In this document: positions 57,659-63,866 of the stretch, in pieces
How positions within the stretch are numbered: position 1 is the first letter of the stretch
Layout of the letters: the number at the start of each line of letters is the position of its first letter
Sequence record: MN871453.1
Direction: 5' to 3' (one strand)
DNA length: 64,000 nucleotides
Translations under genes and position numbers: made by a program
Notes under the pieces: generated by a model
Database searches by the model: none
What the model saw: the letters and a program-made list of their open reading frames with translations, nothing else
What the model was told of the DNA's origin: nothing

Positions 57659-58002
57659 CCCGCGACATCCAGATTAGTGTAAAGTACAGAACAAGTGTCA
57701 TCTCCGTCAAAAACAACACCGCTTTCATTCAACCAACGAACAGTTTCCTTTTTCTGCGTGAAAGAGACCGTACTGTAAACTTTATACCCTGGCGTCTGCG
57801 CCTCGCCTTCCATGGCAGAAAGCGAAGAAGGCTTAGCACGCATAAAGGTGACATGAACGGTTTTAGGGTTAACGCCAGGGAACAACGTCACCGCGTTTTT
57901 AACCTCAGTGTTGACGCGATCGATACAAGCGCTATTCGGCGCAGCTTGGGCGGTCGTAGCAGTGAACAGTAGAGCGATGGCCATCAAAGTAATCTTTTTC
58001 AT
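57655..58002 (-). CDS. secreted/periplasmic protein
   Basis: Sec signal MKKITLMAIALLFTATTAQA; two Cys; SD AGGAG. Confidence 0.7.
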   Translation of the reverse strand: MKKITLMAIALLFTATTAQAAPNSACIDRVNTEVKNAVTLFPGVNPKTVHVTFMRAKPSSLSAMEGEAQTPGYKVYSTVSFTQKKETVRWLNESGVVFDGDDTCSVLYTNLDVAG

Positions 58003-58098
58003 TTTCTTCTCCTTCTAAAACGCGGTTCTTTTGTTCGTTGTCTAAGTGAATCCCGATTTCGCTCATAGCGGCAAAGAAATCGTCGTCGGTGAAATTTT

Positions 58099-58500
58099 TC
58101 ATTCTGTTACGATAAAACCAAAATTGTTTAACGGTCGGAAAGACCCGTGATCGATAAAACGAGAATAGTTGGAAAGCGTTTCGTACCATCTCAAAATTGA
58201 GGGCGTGAGATTGTAGTACTCAATTCCCTCAATGATAGTTAACCAACTGGTCTCAGTTTGAATATCCAGTAAATATCCCTCATAATCGCAATTTAAAATA
58301 TCGTAGAGCGTTTCTACGAACAATTCGGTATCTACATCAGAAAGGTGAAGATCACTTCTGGAGAGCGTTTGTAGCGCCTTAAAAATAGGACCTAGCGTTT
58401 CAAAAACTTCCATCCCATGATAACTCGCGAGTATCCGGATGAATGGCGGATACTCAACGAAAAATCGGCTACGCGACCCCCGGATAATATCGTAAGTCAT
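58099..58500 (-). CDS. hypothetical protein
   Basis: 133-aa ORF in operon. Confidence 0.55.
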   Translation of the reverse strand: MTYDIIRGSRSRFFVEYPPFIRILASYHGMEVFETLGPIFKALQTLSRSDLHLSDVDTELFVETLYDILNCDYEGYLLDIQTETSWLTIIEGIEYYNLTPSILRWYETLSNYSRFIDHGSFRPLNNFGFIVTE

Positions 58501-58702
58501 CAGGGCGACGCTCCTTGAGTTCGCGGACTAAAACTTTCAATGGCGCCGGCGAGAGTGTCACTTTCATCAGCCAGTTATAACAGTCAATTTCTTTGACTTT
58601 AGTCGCCATTAACCGGGCGGCTGTTTTGATAGCCGTTTGAGTTTTGTGCTCGCTGTACGCCAGTTGTAACGTGAGAAGAATGTGATCCCATTCAGTTTCC
58701 AT
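58469..58702 (-). CDS. hypothetical protein
   Basis: 77 aa, SD GGAG. Confidence 0.55.
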   Translation of the reverse strand: METEWDHILLTLQLAYSEHKTQTAIKTAARLMATKVKEIDCYNWLMKVTLSPAPLKVLVRELKERRPDDLRYYPGVA

Positions 58703-58704
58703 GA

Positions 58705-59103
58705 TTAGCTCCGTGTGAAAATGTCTACCCCAAAGAATCCTGGGGCGTCTTTGTAACTGTCACCCAACTTCCAATAGTCATTGAAGGTGCGGCGTTTAAG
58801 GGTTATCACCCCTTCGTATTCGATCAAAGTTTTATTCGTAATGGCGATATCGGCTTTGATCCCTTTATCGGTCAGTCTGAAATTACCGATGAAGTGAGAA
58901 GGCGTCACGATCTTTCTAAAACGTGCGAAGAATTCGTTAGTATTTTCCCAGGCGAGTTTAGTTAATTGAGGATTAAGTTCACCCTCAAGAACTTGTCTGG
59001 TTTTAAACGCCCTTGATAACCGTTCGATATCGGCAGCGCGCAGGTAGTTCGGTAAGGGGAGATAAATATTAACTAGTTTACTAACATTAGCCGGTTTAAA
59101 CAC
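58705..59103 (-). CDS. hypothetical protein, weak T4 gp21 prohead-protease-like motif (GTG start inferred)
   Basis: EGELNPQ...PSHFI resembles GELNHP...SH; SD AAAGGG before GTG 59103. Confidence 0.35.
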   Translation of the reverse strand: MFKPANVSKLVNIYLPLPNYLRAADIERLSRAFKTRQVLEGELNPQLTKLAWENTNEFFARFRKIVTPSHFIGNFRLTDKGIKADIAITNKTLIEYEGVITLKRRTFNDYWKLGDSYKDAPGFFGVDIFTRS

Positions 59104-59156
59104 GTTGAATACCCTTTCATGAAACAAAACAAATAAGGGCGAAAACGCCCTTAGAA

Positions 59157-59324
59157 TTAAATTTTACATGCCCCGCCTTCGCAGTCATCGCTGGCTTCGA
59201 TTTCGGGTTGTTCTTCGATAAACGCTTCGGCTTTCGCTAACGCCGATTCCGCTTCTTCTTCGCTCAGAGTGAATGAATCAAAATCCAGACTTTCGTCTTT
59301 CTTTTCAGGGGTGGTTTGTGACAT
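59157..59324 (-). CDS. 55-aa acidic peptide ending in NrdA-like redox tail
   Basis: Hand translation MSQTTPEKKDESLDFDSFTLSEEEAESALAKAEAFIEEQPEIEASDDCEGGACKI; SD AAAGGA; flanked by hairpins at 59136-59153 and 59408-59427. Confidence 0.8.
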   Translation of the reverse strand: MSQTTPEKKDESLDFDSFTLSEEEAESALAKAEAFIEEQPEIEASDDCEGGACKI

Positions 59325-59437
59325 GGTAACACTATCCTTTCTTTATTCTAGGCGGCTTGCCTCAAAGAAAGACAGAATAAACTTAAAAAAGAAAAAGATC
59401 TAGGAGCGGAGAGGGTTTACCCTCTCCACCCACTTGT

Positions 59438-59908
59438 TTAGCCGAGATAGAAGCAATTACTGCCTTTATTTTCGGTGACGATTTTCTTGAGCCCGTTGGT
59501 TGAGAAAACAACGAAGGTCTCCGGATGATCTTGTACGTAAACCTTAACGGTTTTTGCTTTGGTTTTCTTAACGCCTTCGAAGAACAAGCGCCAGTTACTT
59601 GCCCCAACGGTAGAAACAGGAGAGATCATCTGGTACTTCTGACCGCCCATTTCGATAACCAGCGCGTAGCGATCATCATCGCTGGAAAGCGAGTTGCCGT
59701 TAGTACCGTTCAGAAACAGCGCTTGAACCGGCCATTGGTCGCCAGTATCGCGGCAAGAGAATGCGAGTGAGAAACCGTCGCTGTTTTCGGTGTAGAATTC
59801 CAGAGTACCCTGCTGATAAGATTCGGTCCAATTATTGACGGTGGCCATGGCATTGAATGACGCGATAGAGGACAGGGCGATGAGTGAAGCAGCAATGAAT
59901 TTTTTCAT
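59438..59908 (-). CDS. secreted/periplasmic protein
   Basis: Sec signal MKKFIAASLIALSSIASFNAMA. Confidence 0.75.
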   Translation of the reverse strand: MKKFIAASLIALSSIASFNAMATVNNWTESYQQGTLEFYTENSDGFSLAFSCRDTGDQWPVQALFLNGTNGNSLSSDDDRYALVIEMGGQKYQMISPVSTVGASNWRLFFEGVKKTKAKTVKVYVQDHPETFVVFSTNGLKKIVTENKGSNCFYLG

Positions 59909-59972
59909 GGGATAGACCTTATTAAGTTAACGTAAATAGATAGTTGAACGACAAGGAAACTGCGTCAGTGGA

Positions 59973-60281
59973 CTAGTACCAGTAATTACGGGAATGAAAC
60001 GATTCTCTTGCTACCGCTTCTCTTGTTTTCTGATAAACGAGACCTTCGAAGACAGCGCGCATGATCCAGAAAGCGACATGACTGATCAGGTAGCCGATTT
60101 TACTTAAGAAACAAGTCCAATCACGGAGTTTTCTTATCGAGCGACCTTTCCAGGAATTATCGTAAAGGACTTCTGGTGTTGCGCACTTTGTAGTTAACTT
60201 TTTGTTAGCGATGTAGGTTAAGAAAGTGATCATCGCCAGGACAGCAAAAGTAACAACAGAAATGAACAGATAGAATTCCAT
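59973..60281 (-). CDS. membrane protein
   Basis: N-terminal TM; SD GAGGA. Confidence 0.65.
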   Translation of the reverse strand: MEFYLFISVVTFAVLAMITFLTYIANKKLTTKCATPEVLYDNSWKGRSIRKLRDWTCFLSKIGYLISHVAFWIMRAVFEGLVYQKTREAVARESFHSRNYWY

Positions 60282-60301
60282 GGAGTAGTCCTCGGTTTGT
60301 C

Positions 60302-60607
60302 TTAAAGTGGTTGGTAGTCAGCATCATCAAATTTGTCGTGCCACGTGCGACGGTTCTTGCCGGACACGCGATGGCGGTTACGATGACGTTTGTGTTTTTC
60401 TTTTTGTCTTTCCGTTGGTTCACCGTAGAAAAGAACATCGTTAACAGCAGGTTCTTCGTTAACAATTTCTTCGGTAGCACAAACTACTTCGGTCGTTACC
60501 TCTTCGGTAACGACGTCAGCGGCTGTATTTTGAGTACGCGAAGTAAAGAGGTAACCAATTACAAAAGAGACAATGAAAATAACAATGAAAAGTAGCGCCG
60601 TAAACAT
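60302..60607 (-). CDS. N-anchored membrane protein with basic HR-rich tail
   Basis: TM 1-22; KHKRHRNRHR. Confidence 0.65.
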   Translation of the reverse strand: MFTALLFIVIFIVSFVIGYLFTSRTQNTAADVVTEEVTTEVVCATEEIVNEEPAVNDVLFYGEPTERQKEKHKRHRNRHRVSGKNRRTWHDKFDDADYQPL

Positions 60608-60636
60608 AGATACACCTTTTGGTTAAGAAGATAGCC

Positions 60637-61236
60637 TCACGAGAGGACATGTCCCATCTCGTCGAGTCCTGTTTCTTTATACGTATTAAATTTTTCAGTA
60701 CGGTCTTTAGTGCAATATTTTCCTTCTCTCCTTAAATTATTACGTTCGTTACGTTTAGCCATAAGGAGTTCGCGGAAGGCCAAGAGACTAAAGTTAGAAA
60801 CAATAATACTGAGATTAACTAGTAGAATGCTCGCGGAGATAATTATTCCCACAGGGTGTCTGTTAGTAATACAAGTCAAAAGACCAATTATACTTGTACC
60901 AGTAGTTATTGATAAAATAAAACCGTATTTTTTCAAAATGCGAGTGACGAACGATTTAGTGAGTATTGTACGAAAGAATTTAATGTCCGAACTGGTCATC
61001 TTGCTCCGATGTTTTAACAGACATTTAGACCATACTCGTAACTTGTAAGTGATGAATTCCGCCCATTCTTCGTTGGAGCAGTCTTGATTTATTTTATCAA
61101 AAAAATCAATGACTTCTCTTACTTGACCGACCACATTTAAAACTTTACTAAGTTGAGCAATGCCAGATTCCCACATTTTACGCTCTTCGCTTTTATTTTT
61201 ATTATTTTTCGAACCATTTTCTTTTTTAGAAGTCAT
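60637..61236 (-). CDS. AT-rich two-TM membrane protein
   Basis: 199 aa, hydrophobic hairpin near residues 105-152. Confidence 0.6.
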   Translation of the reverse strand: MTSKKENGSKNNKNKSEERKMWESGIAQLSKVLNVVGQVREVIDFFDKINQDCSNEEWAEFITYKLRVWSKCLLKHRSKMTSSDIKFFRTILTKSFVTRILKKYGFILSITTGTSIIGLLTCITNRHPVGIIISASILLVNLSIIVSNFSLLAFRELLMAKRNERNNLRREGKYCTKDRTEKFNTYKETGLDEMGHVLS

Positions 61237-61254
61237 TTTTATTTCCTTTATAAA

Positions 61255-61539
61255 TTAATTATTTTTTGATGAATTCAAACTACCATAAAACATCAAACCG
61301 ATGATTCCGGTAAGGATAGTTAAAGTCAACAGTTCGATGTTGAAAATAACTGCCCCAATAATAGAGAGGATGAAAATAGCTGAAATGACAGCATAAAGTA
61401 CTTTAGTACCTTTATTACTCTTACCTTTTTCTTCTTCGGTTTTTGCATTCTTGATGGCCAATTTGTTCATTCCAATGGCCGTCCAAAGAACAAAACTTAT
61501 AGCGAAGGTTAATGCAATAATGATGATGGAAGTTAACAT
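61255..61539 (-). CDS. multi-TM small membrane protein
   Basis: 94 aa, three hydrophobic segments, SD AAGGA. Confidence 0.65.
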   Translation of the reverse strand: MLTSIIIIALTFAISFVLWTAIGMNKLAIKNAKTEEEKGKSNKGTKVLYAVISAIFILSIIGAVIFNIELLTLTILTGIIGLMFYGSLNSSKNN

Positions 61540-61873
61540 AATTTTTCCTTTTACTTTAAGAGTAGACTTAGACGTGAGAGAGTTGTTTGCGTTATAAGAG
61601 TCGCATACGGCGATGTCCAGAACCAGACGGCGAAGCCTGTCATTTGTTCTGCAACTACCGAACCAGTAAGAGGGTTTACTGCTATTGTACCTGAACTCTG
61701 ATCTTTCCTCGATTTCGGAAGAGTCAGTAGGTACAACGCCACAGCCTCGATTACAGGTGTCGGGTGGGTAACGAGAAATATCGTCTTATAACGGTTTGAG
61801 AGTGTGAGAATTTAATTTAGCTTATCGTAAGGCGTTTCCTTCTTATCTCGTGTGCCAAGGGTGAGGTGACGAC

Positions 61874-62161
61874 TTAAGCGGTTACCGCTGCGTCAGAGAC
61901 GTCGGTCTCGCCTGCGTCAGTCGCAGTCTCGCCGTCAGTGGCAGGAGAAATGACGGTTTTGAGGTTGTTGTAGCTATCGTGAATATAGCTGAAGATAACC
62001 AAGACCGCAAAAGCGTAGGCTGCCACTTCCATGGCAGTAGCCATGCAGAACGCGGCGAAGATTGCCAGCGCGGCAACGATCAGGGTGTCGGTGATGAAAG
62101 CAAAGATTGCTTTGGTTTTCTCAGTGAAAGAGAAAGAGAAGAACGCTTTGATTTTTTCCAT
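61874..62161 (-). CDS. small membrane protein with acidic tail
   Basis: 95 aa, hydrophobic hairpin, SD AAGG. Confidence 0.7.
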   Translation of the reverse strand: MEKIKAFFSFSFTEKTKAIFAFITDTLIVAALAIFAAFCMATAMEVAAYAFAVLVIFSYIHDSYNNLKTVISPATDGETATDAGETDVSDAAVTA

Positions 62162-62241
62162 GATAATTTACCTTTTGAATTGAATAATTTAACTACGGGT
62201 GAGAGTGCACTACTCACGCTGTTGAGAGGCAGCGCTTACTA

Positions 62242-62361
62242 CTATTTGACCGCTTTTAAGTAACTCCCTACGGCGACGGCGAAAACGCAGGCCGGAAGTA
62301 AAGCCAGGTCAAGAATAAGTACCGAGGAAATAATCCCCAGTACCACGAAAGACGTTTTCAT
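62242..62361 (-). CDS. 39-aa membrane peptide
   Basis: Hand translation MKTSFVVLGIISSVLILDLALLPACVFAVAVGSYLKAVK; TAATG overlap, SD GGAGG. Confidence 0.6.
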   Translation of the reverse strand: MKTSFVVLGIISSVLILDLALLPACVFAVAVGSYLKAVK

Positions 62362-62531
62362 TACAACGCCTCCGGTGAATGAGTTGCGTTGAAATTGGCT
62401 TTGTTAAACTGCTCTTCTGAAAGCGCTCCAATAACTCCCGCGGCGAACGCTACCAGAACTGCTGGGATGATAGTCAGTTCAAAGAAGGTGCAGATCAGCA
62501 GAGTGAGAATTAACGTGATGAAGTAAGACAT
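62361..62531 (-). CDS. 56-aa membrane peptide
   Basis: Hand translation MSYFITLILTLLICTFFELTIIPAVLVAFAAGVIGALSEEQF...; SD GAGGGAG. Confidence 0.62.
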   Translation of the reverse strand: MSYFITLILTLLICTFFELTIIPAVLVAFAAGVIGALSEEQFNKANFNATHSPEAL

Positions 62532-62546
62532 GATGATTTCTCCCTC

Positions 62547-62705
62547 TTAGGATAAATAGGTAACGGAGACTAACAGAGCGAACGGCGAAACAATATACCA
62601 GACGAGCACAGAGACGAACCCGTAAAGGATGGCCATCGGTAACGATACGCCGAAACAAAGCAATGCAATGAGAGTGACAATTAATAAAAGTATACTTTCT
62701 TTCAT
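62547..62705 (-). CDS. 52-aa membrane peptide, first gene after early promoter
   Basis: Hand translation MKESILLLIVTLIALLCFGVSLPMAILYGFVSVLVWYIVSPFALLVSVTYLS; SD GAGG. Confidence 0.62.
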   Translation of the reverse strand: MKESILLLIVTLIALLCFGVSLPMAILYGFVSVLVWYIVSPFALLVSVTYLS

Positions 62706-62724
62706 TTTACTTTACCTCTTATTG

Positions 62725-62799
62725 GTTTAGTTATTTGGAAAAGACTTTTTCCTTTCCTATTTCACCTTAGCAATATATACATCAAAAAAACTGCATTTC
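62725..62799 (-). repeat. duplicated early promoter plus leader (copy 2)
   Basis: Near-identical to 41193-41266. Confidence 0.85.
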
Positions 62800-62816
62800 G
62801 ATTTATTGAAGTTTTT

Positions 62817-63386
62817 ATGAAACATCTACCTTGGGGATTGAATACGATGAAGAAAATTACGCTTTGGGGACATCCTGTTCCGTTATTGGGCTTCTTGCAT
62901 TGGCTGAGTTTTTTATTGATCTACTTCGCAGCGTTGATCATTTGCGTCATTGTCACACCGTTTCTACCGGCCTTTGCGACGAAGGACGGGAAACTACCGA
63001 AATGGCTGAAATGGTTCGACACACCGGACAATAGTTTAGATGGGGATTCCGGTTGGAAAGAGAAACACTCTCTCTGGGTAAAGGTACTCCCTGAATGGGC
63101 GCAAACTTACGTCGCCCGTGTCTTTTGGTTATACCGCAATCCATTGTACGGTTTTTCTATTAGCGTGTTAGGTGCACCAAAAGACAAATTCCGTCAACCT
63201 GTTTTAGAGGGTAAAGGGTTTGATGTTAAAGGCACCTATAAGTCCCATTACTGGATGGTCTACTTCATGCGTGACGACCACGTGAAGAAACGCCGGTTTA
63301 AGGTTTACATTGGATGGAAACTGAAAGCAGAAGGATTTGAGAAATACCAGTTTGCATTTCTGATCAACCCGTTCCAAACGCCGTAA
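62817..63386 (+). CDS. conserved-type phage protein, late strand (likely start at second Met, MKKITL)
   Basis: WLKWFDTPDNSLDGDSGW, WLYRNP; N-terminal TM; TATG at 62816. Confidence 0.65.
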   Translation: MKHLPWGLNTMKKITLWGHPVPLLGFLHWLSFLLIYFAALIICVIVTPFLPAFATKDGKLPKWLKWFDTPDNSLDGDSGWKEKHSLWVKVLPEWAQTYVARVFWLYRNPLYGFSISVLGAPKDKFRQPVLEGKGFDVKGTYKSHYWMVYFMRDDHVKKRRFKVYIGWKLKAEGFEKYQFAFLINPFQTP

Positions 63387-63392
63387 AAGAAA

Positions 63393-63428
63393 CAAAAAAA
63401 AGAGAGGGCAAACGCCCTCTCTTTTTTA
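63393..63428. terminator. bidirectional terminator
   Basis: AAAAAAGAGAGGGC/GCCCTCTCTTTTTT between convergent genes. Confidence 0.8.
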
Positions 63429-63866
63429 TATTCTTTTTAAAGAATCGATTTCCAGCGCCACTTCAAATTCGTAAAGCATTCGCCCGAAGAAGGTCGCAAT
63501 CGTGAGCAAGCCGAGGAGGTATTCGTGATGTACCATCAACAGAATCGTAAAAGCCAGTGCAACGATGATTCGCTGACAAACATTCATTCCGCCTACAAAG
63601 GTGATGTGTTTTTCTGCCTTTTCAACGATTACTTGGCGCATAGCGGGGGTCAGGACGGCTCGTGTTATATCGGGCAGTGAAATATATTGGTAAAGCACCC
63701 AGCCTAAACGACCGAGGATGAGTGCTACTGCCCATAGACGAACCAAATCAAAGGCTGTTTCGTTTTGCTTAAAACACAATACAGCGAGTACCACGCAAGA
63801 GAGCAGCGAGCAAATTTTAGAGGTGAGGGTAGAGAGGTAGAACATCTTTGTATTCCTTTTCTTCAT
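63426..63866 (-). CDS. four-TM membrane protein
   Basis: 146 aa, four hydrophobic segments. Confidence 0.6.
   Translation of the reverse strand: MKKRNTKMFYLSTLTSKICSLLSCVVLAVLCFKQNETAFDLVRLWAVALILGRLGWVLYQYISLPDITRAVLTPAMRQVIVEKAEKHITFVGGMNVCQRIIVALAFTILLMVHHEYLLGLLTIATFFGRMLYEFEVALEIDSLKRI

Follow-up and report, generated by a model that had tools for sequence, protein, structure and literature searches.

Ribonucleotide reductase (RNR) makes all DNA precursors. After it has acted, the Cys pair on the tail of the enzyme is reduced in turn by thioredoxin (Trx) or glutaredoxin (Grx), which, like NrdH and NrdC of phage T4, are thioredoxin-fold proteins with a CxxC motif that serve the RNR electron relay, and some of which are encoded by phages. 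The C-terminal tail of the other subunit, NrdB, is the alpha-binding peptide. In class I RNRs, the disordered C-terminal Cys pair re-reduces the active site (PMC9669993). The C-terminal tail has so far been treated as inseparable from the enzyme.

A separate gene that corresponds to the C-terminal working segment of a larger enzyme is known from GrcA/YfiD, which reproduces the C-terminal glycyl-radical segment of pyruvate formate-lyase (PFL) on its own and acts as a 'spare part' in trans. Sml1, reportedly described by Zhang et al. in 2007 as a small disordered inhibitor of yeast RNR, is said to act where the C-terminal tail of the large subunit works. The PA incompatibility domain of UN-24, the RNR large subunit of Neurospora, is a lone C-terminal piece that interacts with the RNR large subunit (PMC3618301).

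GrcA, Sml1 and the UN-24 C-terminal domain are the nearest ideas to the phage-encoded peptide described below, and none of them is a relative. The peptide shares with GrcA/YfiD the concept only, in that a copy of the NrdA tail is encoded as a separate gene, whereas the enzyme, the fold and the chemistry (glycyl radical in GrcA, dithiol in the peptide) are different, there is no sequence relation, and GrcA is a folded domain of ~127 aa whereas the peptide is a disordered chain of ~50 aa. No match of the peptide to a glycyl-radical motif or to the PFL C-terminus was found in Pfam or NCBIfam. Sml1, unlike the peptide, is not a copy of the tail, has no Cys pair and is an inhibitor, and the peptide gave no Pfam match that would connect the two. 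The UN-24 PA domain differs in that it is a 135-aa fragment made experimentally from a eukaryotic enzyme, with no natural separate gene, and that it forms a toxic, non-reducible complex (PMC3618301). In contrast to the thioredoxin-fold reductants, the peptide has C-x4-C, one predicted helix, no thioredoxin fold and no CxxC motif. The preliminary description of this DNA had named no characterised system of this type, and in our literature search no paper was found that contained the tail strings or described a separately encoded RNR tail.

The peptide is encoded in a stretch of 64,000 nucleotides from sequence record MN871453.1, referred to here as the window. Records MN871447-MN871453 comprise several near-identical genomes, which are titled 'Serratia phage', have Klebsiella pneumoniae as the recorded host and carry no annotation. 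The 3 kb of the window that were searched (58000-61000) were 100% identical to Serratia phage KpSz_1, KpZh_1 and KpZh_LPS_45 and ~98.6% identical to Klebsiella phage KpLz-2_45 (genus Siatvirus, 296.7 kb). The KpLz-2_45 genome encodes PhuZ tubulin and split multisubunit RNA polymerases, and it is therefore a phiKZ-like jumbo phage. The ORF corresponds to the hypothetical protein MOA67_gp267 of KpLz-2_45 and is likewise 'hypothetical' in related Siatvirus jumbo phages, and the 55-aa protein is 100% identical in 10 phage records. The features of the locus, in window coordinates, are the following.

59157..59324, minus strand: 55-aa ORF including the stop codon, with an ATG start and with Cys48 and Cys53
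59335-59339, minus strand: Shine-Dalgarno (SD) sequence AAGGA, 10 nt before the ATG
59262..59297, minus strand: short acidic/hydrophobic N-terminal motif, residues 10-21, the second conserved element
59211..59261, minus strand: predicted single acidic helix (linker), residues 22-38, from AF2 on the family alignment
59160..59207, minus strand: NrdA-like flexible tail, residues 40-55, with Cys48 and Cys53 and ending in K-I, from the match to NrdA tails
59124..59153 (hairpin 59134-59153), minus strand: intrinsic terminator of the ORF, directly after the stop codon
59382..59434 (hairpin 59402-59434), minus strand: upstream hairpin and U-rich run (-24.3 kcal/mol, z -4.3)

An ORF of 55 aa with its own SD sequence, lying between hairpins and carrying C48 and C53, had been reported before, and all of this was borne out, with the minus strand as the coding strand. 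The protein is small and acidic (net charge -13), and only two residues remain between Cys53 and the C-terminus. The terminator of the ORF consists of an 8-bp GC-rich stem with a 4-nt loop and a U-run (-13 kcal/mol, z -5.9), and the upstream hairpin is most likely the terminator of the preceding gene (59438..59908). The ORF looks like a short transcription unit of its own, because hairpins are located on both sides. In comparison with two relatives, Centimanus and FBKp24, the stem of the upstream hairpin shows compensatory substitutions by which the pairing is kept; the T-run after this hairpin and one leader block are invariant in both relatives, in which an AAAGGA block upstream of the ORF is also kept. 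The preceding gene, on the minus strand, encodes a 156-aa protein which has a signal-peptide-like hydrophobic N-terminal stretch and no Pfam match, and it is kept at the same position in Centimanus. On the other side, a 77-aa ORF at 58469..58702 (minus strand) matches Pfam DUF7740 barely above the gathering score (29 vs 28 bits).

Searches of Pfam, NCBIfam and PHROGs returned nothing significant for the window protein. The Pfam domains of the NrdA catalytic barrel and ATP-cone (PF02867, PF00317 and PF03477), all three of which are carried by true NrdA proteins, had no match in the 55-aa protein. The possibility that the locus encodes a small RNA instead of a protein was rejected, since Rfam returned no credible RNA family for the ORF region and the pattern of substitutions was as expected of coding sequence. 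The AF2 model built on the family alignment (mean pLDDT 69.5) contained one helix, at residues 22-38 (block pLDDT 82-88), while residues 39-55 (block pLDDT 52-57) and the N-terminal motif were without secondary structure. The protein is predicted to be intrinsically disordered, with a flexible tail.

When 28 Gb of E. coli genomes were searched with the ORF by blastn, two places only were matched, both of them at the 3' end of nrdA, where 27 of the last 30 nucleotides of the E. coli gene are identical. The comparison with NrdA was made by way of this blastn-located gene because the match was too short to be scored by phmmer, which found no NrdA when the peptide was searched against the PDB sequences. 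The likeness to the E. coli NrdA tail that had been pointed out earlier, consisting of the Cys spacing, the terminal K-I and the acidic linker, holds in the fetched sequence, in which nine of the last ten residues match with identical Cys geometry (BLASTP E 9e-5). For Morganella NrdA, agreement extends to 11 of the last 12 residues, with the same Cys-x4-Cys-x2-end (E 7e-6), and the last ten residues are identical in a Bermanella NrdA and in a metagenomic NrdA fragment. Among Enterobacterales NrdA proteins (120 clusters, those of Klebsiella and Erwinia among them), hardly any variation occurs in the last eight residues, which differ from those of the peptide at one Ser/Gly position, at which Brenneria has the version of the peptide. 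A fine co-variation of the peptide tail with the tail of the host NrdA was not seen; at this position the Klebsiella and Erwinia NrdA proteins have Ser and the peptide has Gly.

When the family profile is aligned to NrdA, the match begins at the R-D-G motif and takes in the whole flexible tail past the ordered core. The copied NrdA stretch comprises ~16 C-terminal residues in the window protein and ~22 in the wider family. The NrdA-tail segment is found as a separate 25-residue chain in PDB 1qfn, which we take to be the complex with glutaredoxin-1. The peptide and the class Ia NrdA tail (E. coli residues ~737-761) have in common the C-x4-C pair placed two residues from the C-terminus, the acidic run before the Cys residues and the disordered character, whereas the peptide has neither an RNR catalytic domain nor an RNR gene in its genome, and its N-terminal motif and helix are family-specific and are both lacking in NrdA. 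Only one of the 306 Met-started ORFs of at least 30 aa in the window ends in C-x4-C-x2, namely the 55-aa ORF. The N-terminal motif is at most a tentative candidate for a mimic of the NrdB C-terminal tail; the spacing of acidic and hydrophobic residues in that tail recurs in the subfamily of the window protein, and the larger subfamily with a glycine run is spaced differently.

By its sequence, the peptide is a member of an uncharacterised family of strongly acidic proteins of 42-64 aa, or C-terminal modules, with a net charge of about -8 to -14. The window protein has the traits of this family, which are the acidic/hydrophobic N-terminal motif, two Cys residues at the extreme C-terminus and an aliphatic last residue. 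Searches of phage records by tblastn found full-length copies in all Siatvirus-like genomes, as well as shorter stand-alone ORFs (45-51 aa) with the same ending in Klebsiella phage Miami and its relatives, in Yersinia phage phiR1-37 and in Erwinia phages of the genus Snuvirus, the last with stand-alone copies in ~20 records. A profile search of a word-indexed protein collection returned ~50 clusters of 42-64 aa. The family occurs in several unrelated jumbo-phage lineages, and copies are also located in Moraxella and Neisseria chromosomes; therefore, it is not confined to phages. Pfam and NCBIfam hold no model that covers the family, and every record says hypothetical. Two PHROGs of 'unknown function', 10239 (47 positions) and 14561 (51 positions), match the module and have no link to NrdA on record; family member P0058 matched phrog_10239 at 6.6e-9, and the window tail matched phrog_14561 at 0.048, which is below significance. 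The copies outside the window that are discussed below are the following.

L003:3989-4144: g117 of phage phiR1-37
L019:8001-8153: Moraxella, chromosomal stand-alone copy
L024:6001-6141: Moraxella, chromosomal stand-alone copy
L025:1653-1718: Neisseria metagenome-assembled genome (MAG), stand-alone copy
P0052-P0058, P0061, P0079, P0084, P0093: fusion-related proteins from the HMMER scan

An unbiased HMMER scan of 1.84 billion representatives (E <= 1e-3) gave 57 matches, one of which, a long acidic repeat protein, was dropped as a false positive. In all of the remaining 56, the module is located at the extreme C-terminus with two Cys residues, and the last residue is Ile or Leu. Conservation of the CxxxxCKI end had been proposed earlier as a check; the spacing C-x4-C-x2-end is present in 51 of the 56 and is shorter in five, and the penultimate residue varies in distant members. 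In an alignment of 50 members, C48, G51, C53 and K54 are conserved in 100%, I55 in 92%, and E43, D46, E49 and G50 in 90% of the members; this set was found through words of the tail, and the HMMER set gives the fairer picture of tail conservation. Exactly two Cys residues are present in 48 of the 50 members. The N-terminal motif of the same members is hydrophobic at residue 15 in 100%, at residue 20 in 92% and at residue 18 in 72%, and it is acidic at residues 14 and 16 in 80%. Many members have a glycine run before the Ser/Cys-containing end, which is absent from the subfamily of the window protein.

Between lineages, the identity outside the tail is only 30-45%. The last 18 codons of the window ORF differ from those of Centimanus and FBKp24 at four synonymous and no non-synonymous positions, and distant members keep the serine of the tail through a switch of the Ser codon family. 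These codon comparisons show the tail to be under purifying selection.

The E. coli NrdA and NrdB sequences were searched by tblastn against the window and the whole KpLz-2_45 genome, and nothing was found other than the tail of the peptide itself. The KpLz-2_45 genome has no annotated RNR, and no nrdA or nrdB is located near the ORF. The same tblastn search, in which the positive controls worked, found no RNR alpha or beta subunit in the complete genome of pEa_SNUABM_7 (Snuvirus), a different, non-phiKZ-like jumbo phage, and no phage RNR appears among the genes tabulated for phiR1-37 in the literature. The absence of class II and class III RNRs is based on annotation and on tblastn with class Ia queries only. 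Since no RNR genes were found in three peptide-bearing phage lineages, the tail can only relate to the NrdA of the host.

The earlier observation that no nrdA lies beside the ORF is therefore extended, as none is present near it or anywhere in the closest annotated genome. In contrast, the proposal that the peptide completes a phage RNR is excluded: class I alpha and beta subunits are missing from the window with KpLz-2_45 and from pEa_SNUABM_7, and none is annotated in phiR1-37. A fragment of a split phage nrdA was likewise rejected on the ground that RNR alpha and beta are absent from the genome. What the preliminary description had stated about the tail stands, and is strengthened by the family-wide conservation of the Cys residues. 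The copies in bacterial chromosomes, the fusions to unrelated domains and the near-silence of one homologue in RNA-seq, all described below, go beyond it.

Enzymes of salvage and modification are encoded in the phages concerned, namely thymidylate synthase and kinase, thymidine kinase, dUTPase, DHFR and dCMP deaminase. Scanning the phage for CxxC motifs with a simple pattern, which is a weak test, revealed no Trx/Grx-like ORF. A close relative, NC_061418.1, encodes an NAD+ salvage set (NadR, PnuC, nicotinamide phosphoribosyltransferase and PRPP synthetase) along with several dNTP salvage enzymes and no RNR.

The neighbours of the peptide gene are not conserved between lineages. A dCMP deaminase and an HD hydrolase are located near the peptide gene in Snuvirus and Miami, a MYG1-like hydrolase on a 325-kb contig, and Endonuclease_1 and thymidylate synthase on a phiKZ-like marine contig; in these other lineages the gene tends to lie loosely near genes of nucleotide metabolism. 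In both Miami and pEa_SNUABM_7, the peptide gene abuts or overlaps a preceding gene of ~165 aa. A conserved neighbour gene was considered and rejected, as no relationship was detectable between the ~165-aa genes of these two phages, or between either of them and the neighbours of the ORF in the window.

Ten representatives of 115-360 aa end in the whole ~45-aa module, which follows one of at least four unrelated N-domains. These N-domains gave no Pfam, PHROG or fold match and none of them is present in the window phage; the AF2 model of one fusion N-domain (pLDDT 62) gave no informative fold match in the PDB or BFVD. In Moraxella nasibovis and a second Moraxella genome, the peptide gene is found at a syntenic place among housekeeping genes, away from the nrd genes.

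Published transcriptome data are available for the phiR1-37 homologue g117, for which the mean gene-read counts (TGR) were 3.91, 1.51 and 1.16 in the early, middle and late phases, whereas the counts of its neighbours lie between hundreds and tens of thousands (PMC4848604 Table S2). In the published table, g117 is preceded by predicted sigma-70-type promoters, and expression of the next gene, g118, ranks among the highest (PMC4848604). The near-silence of g117 speaks more strongly than any other finding against an important role under laboratory conditions.

The tail of the peptide, whose C-terminus is free in every case, has retained the positions conserved in NrdA, and because of this it probably meets the same partners as the tail of NrdA; the reductants would be the thioredoxin and glutaredoxin of the host and the oxidant would be the active-site disulfide of the host NrdA. 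The best reading of these data, which we put forward tentatively, is that the peptide is a trans-acting dithiol shuttle in the relay from host Trx/Grx to class Ia RNR. The free peptide would act in trans as an extra dithiol shuttle that supports the turnover of the host RNR, reducing the active-site disulfide of NrdA and then being re-reduced itself, with no dead-end adduct. The N-terminal acidic/hydrophobic motif may dock the peptide on a partner and thereby raise its local concentration. A 300-kb phage without an RNR would rely on the host enzyme for dNTPs. On this reading, a free tail would be able to reach the active site of NrdA and to speed its turnover.

Both a shuttle for the host RNR and a decoy or competitor fit the evidence obtained from sequence. 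As a competitive mimic, the free tail would compete for the active-site cleft of NrdA or for Trx/Grx1, and would dampen or re-time dNTP synthesis or thiol flow; the identity to the NrdA tail and the small, acidic and disordered nature of the protein agree with this equally, the chromosomal copies in Moraxella and Neisseria suggest a cellular regulatory role, and yeast Sml1, as a small disordered regulator of RNR, would be an analogous case. Furthermore, an RNR C-terminal domain that was expressed free in trans formed a complex with yeast Rnr1 and was toxic (PMC3618301). However, for phages that lack an RNR of their own, blocking the host enzyme would cut off the sole de novo source of dNTPs, and a reduced peptide would probably be no substrate for Trx/Grx unless it were continually oxidised. 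Both Cys residues are kept in all members, as in a competent reductant and not as in a dead-end blocker, and a shuttle would seem to suit better than a blocker because the two Cys residues form a complete dithiol and there is no single trapping Cys. On these grounds a decoy is considered unlikely. The presence of the module in at least four fusions and in the Moraxella and Neisseria chromosomes fits a general adapter role at least as well as the shuttle. Such an adapter would be a portable address or redox tag which ties a fused domain, or a partner of the N-terminal motif, to host Trx/Grx or RNR; alternatively, the disulfide that it reduces might be that of another phage or host partner and not that of NrdA, or it might hold a partner at RNR. 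The conservation of the N-terminal motif as an element separate from the tail, the changing genomic neighbours and the close apposition to the preceding ~165-aa gene in Miami and pEa_SNUABM_7 would also be explained in this way. On the other hand, the N-domains are without any match that would implicate a redox enzyme, some of the fusions may be neighbouring genes joined through the loss of a stop codon, and the window phage has none of the fusion N-domains, and an adapter in this sense appears improbable. A broader formulation, that a portable NrdA-tail plug links either the free peptide or a fused domain into the relay from host Trx/Grx to RNR, in RNR-less jumbo phages and in some bacteria, is a possible but doubtful account.

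Two further explanations would separate the ending from any function in RNR reduction. A convergent ending unrelated to RNR might belong to a RiPP precursor (a leader followed by Gly-Gly and a Ser/Cys core) or to a peptide that binds a metal or a cluster, as suggested by the glycine run before the Ser/Cys-containing end in many members and by the two Cys residues per chain. Chance likeness of this kind is very improbable given the match of 11 of 12 residues to NrdA, which is co-linear up to the R-D-G motif, and given that the subfamily of the window protein is without the glycine run and that the protein is extremely acidic. In addition, neither modifying enzymes nor transporters are conserved in the vicinity, and the neighbours, which differ in every lineage, include no known maturation enzyme. 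The peptide might also be an inert remnant of a captured nrdA 3' end that has been kept by chance, as could be thought from the identity of 27 of 30 nucleotides to the E. coli nrdA 3' end and from the very low transcription of the phiR1-37 homologue. This would hardly leave an intact ORF with its own SD sequence and terminator across lineages that are only 30-45% identical elsewhere in the protein, nor a tail in which the changes are only synonymous, including the switches of Ser codon family, and it is the least probable of the explanations considered here.

The recurring module points to an undescribed way of plugging into the DNA-precursor supply of the cell. If the portable plug proved real, it would be the first case, for any RNR, of a redox tail encoded in trans, and the re-reduction of RNR would be a control point that is exploited by viruses. 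A conserved tail with a gene of its own, in viruses that rely wholly on the host enzyme, would open a new approach to the limits and the control of RNR turnover in cells. It would also represent a new class of phage-host interface, in which a flexible enzyme segment and not a folded domain is mimicked, and a protein that recurs as 'hypothetical' in jumbo phages would gain a likely role. Judging from the bacterial copies, the idea seems to reach beyond viruses.

Upstream of the 156-aa gene, at 59973..63866, the window contains successive small ORFs, most of them on the minus strand, whose products have strongly hydrophobic, membrane-like segments. The megablast identity to KpLz-2_45, LPKP23 and MJ359 ends near window position 60520, and five other records continue beyond it. 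Because identity stops near 60520 in some of the records, 59973..63866 represents a region that is variable among Siatvirus genomes.
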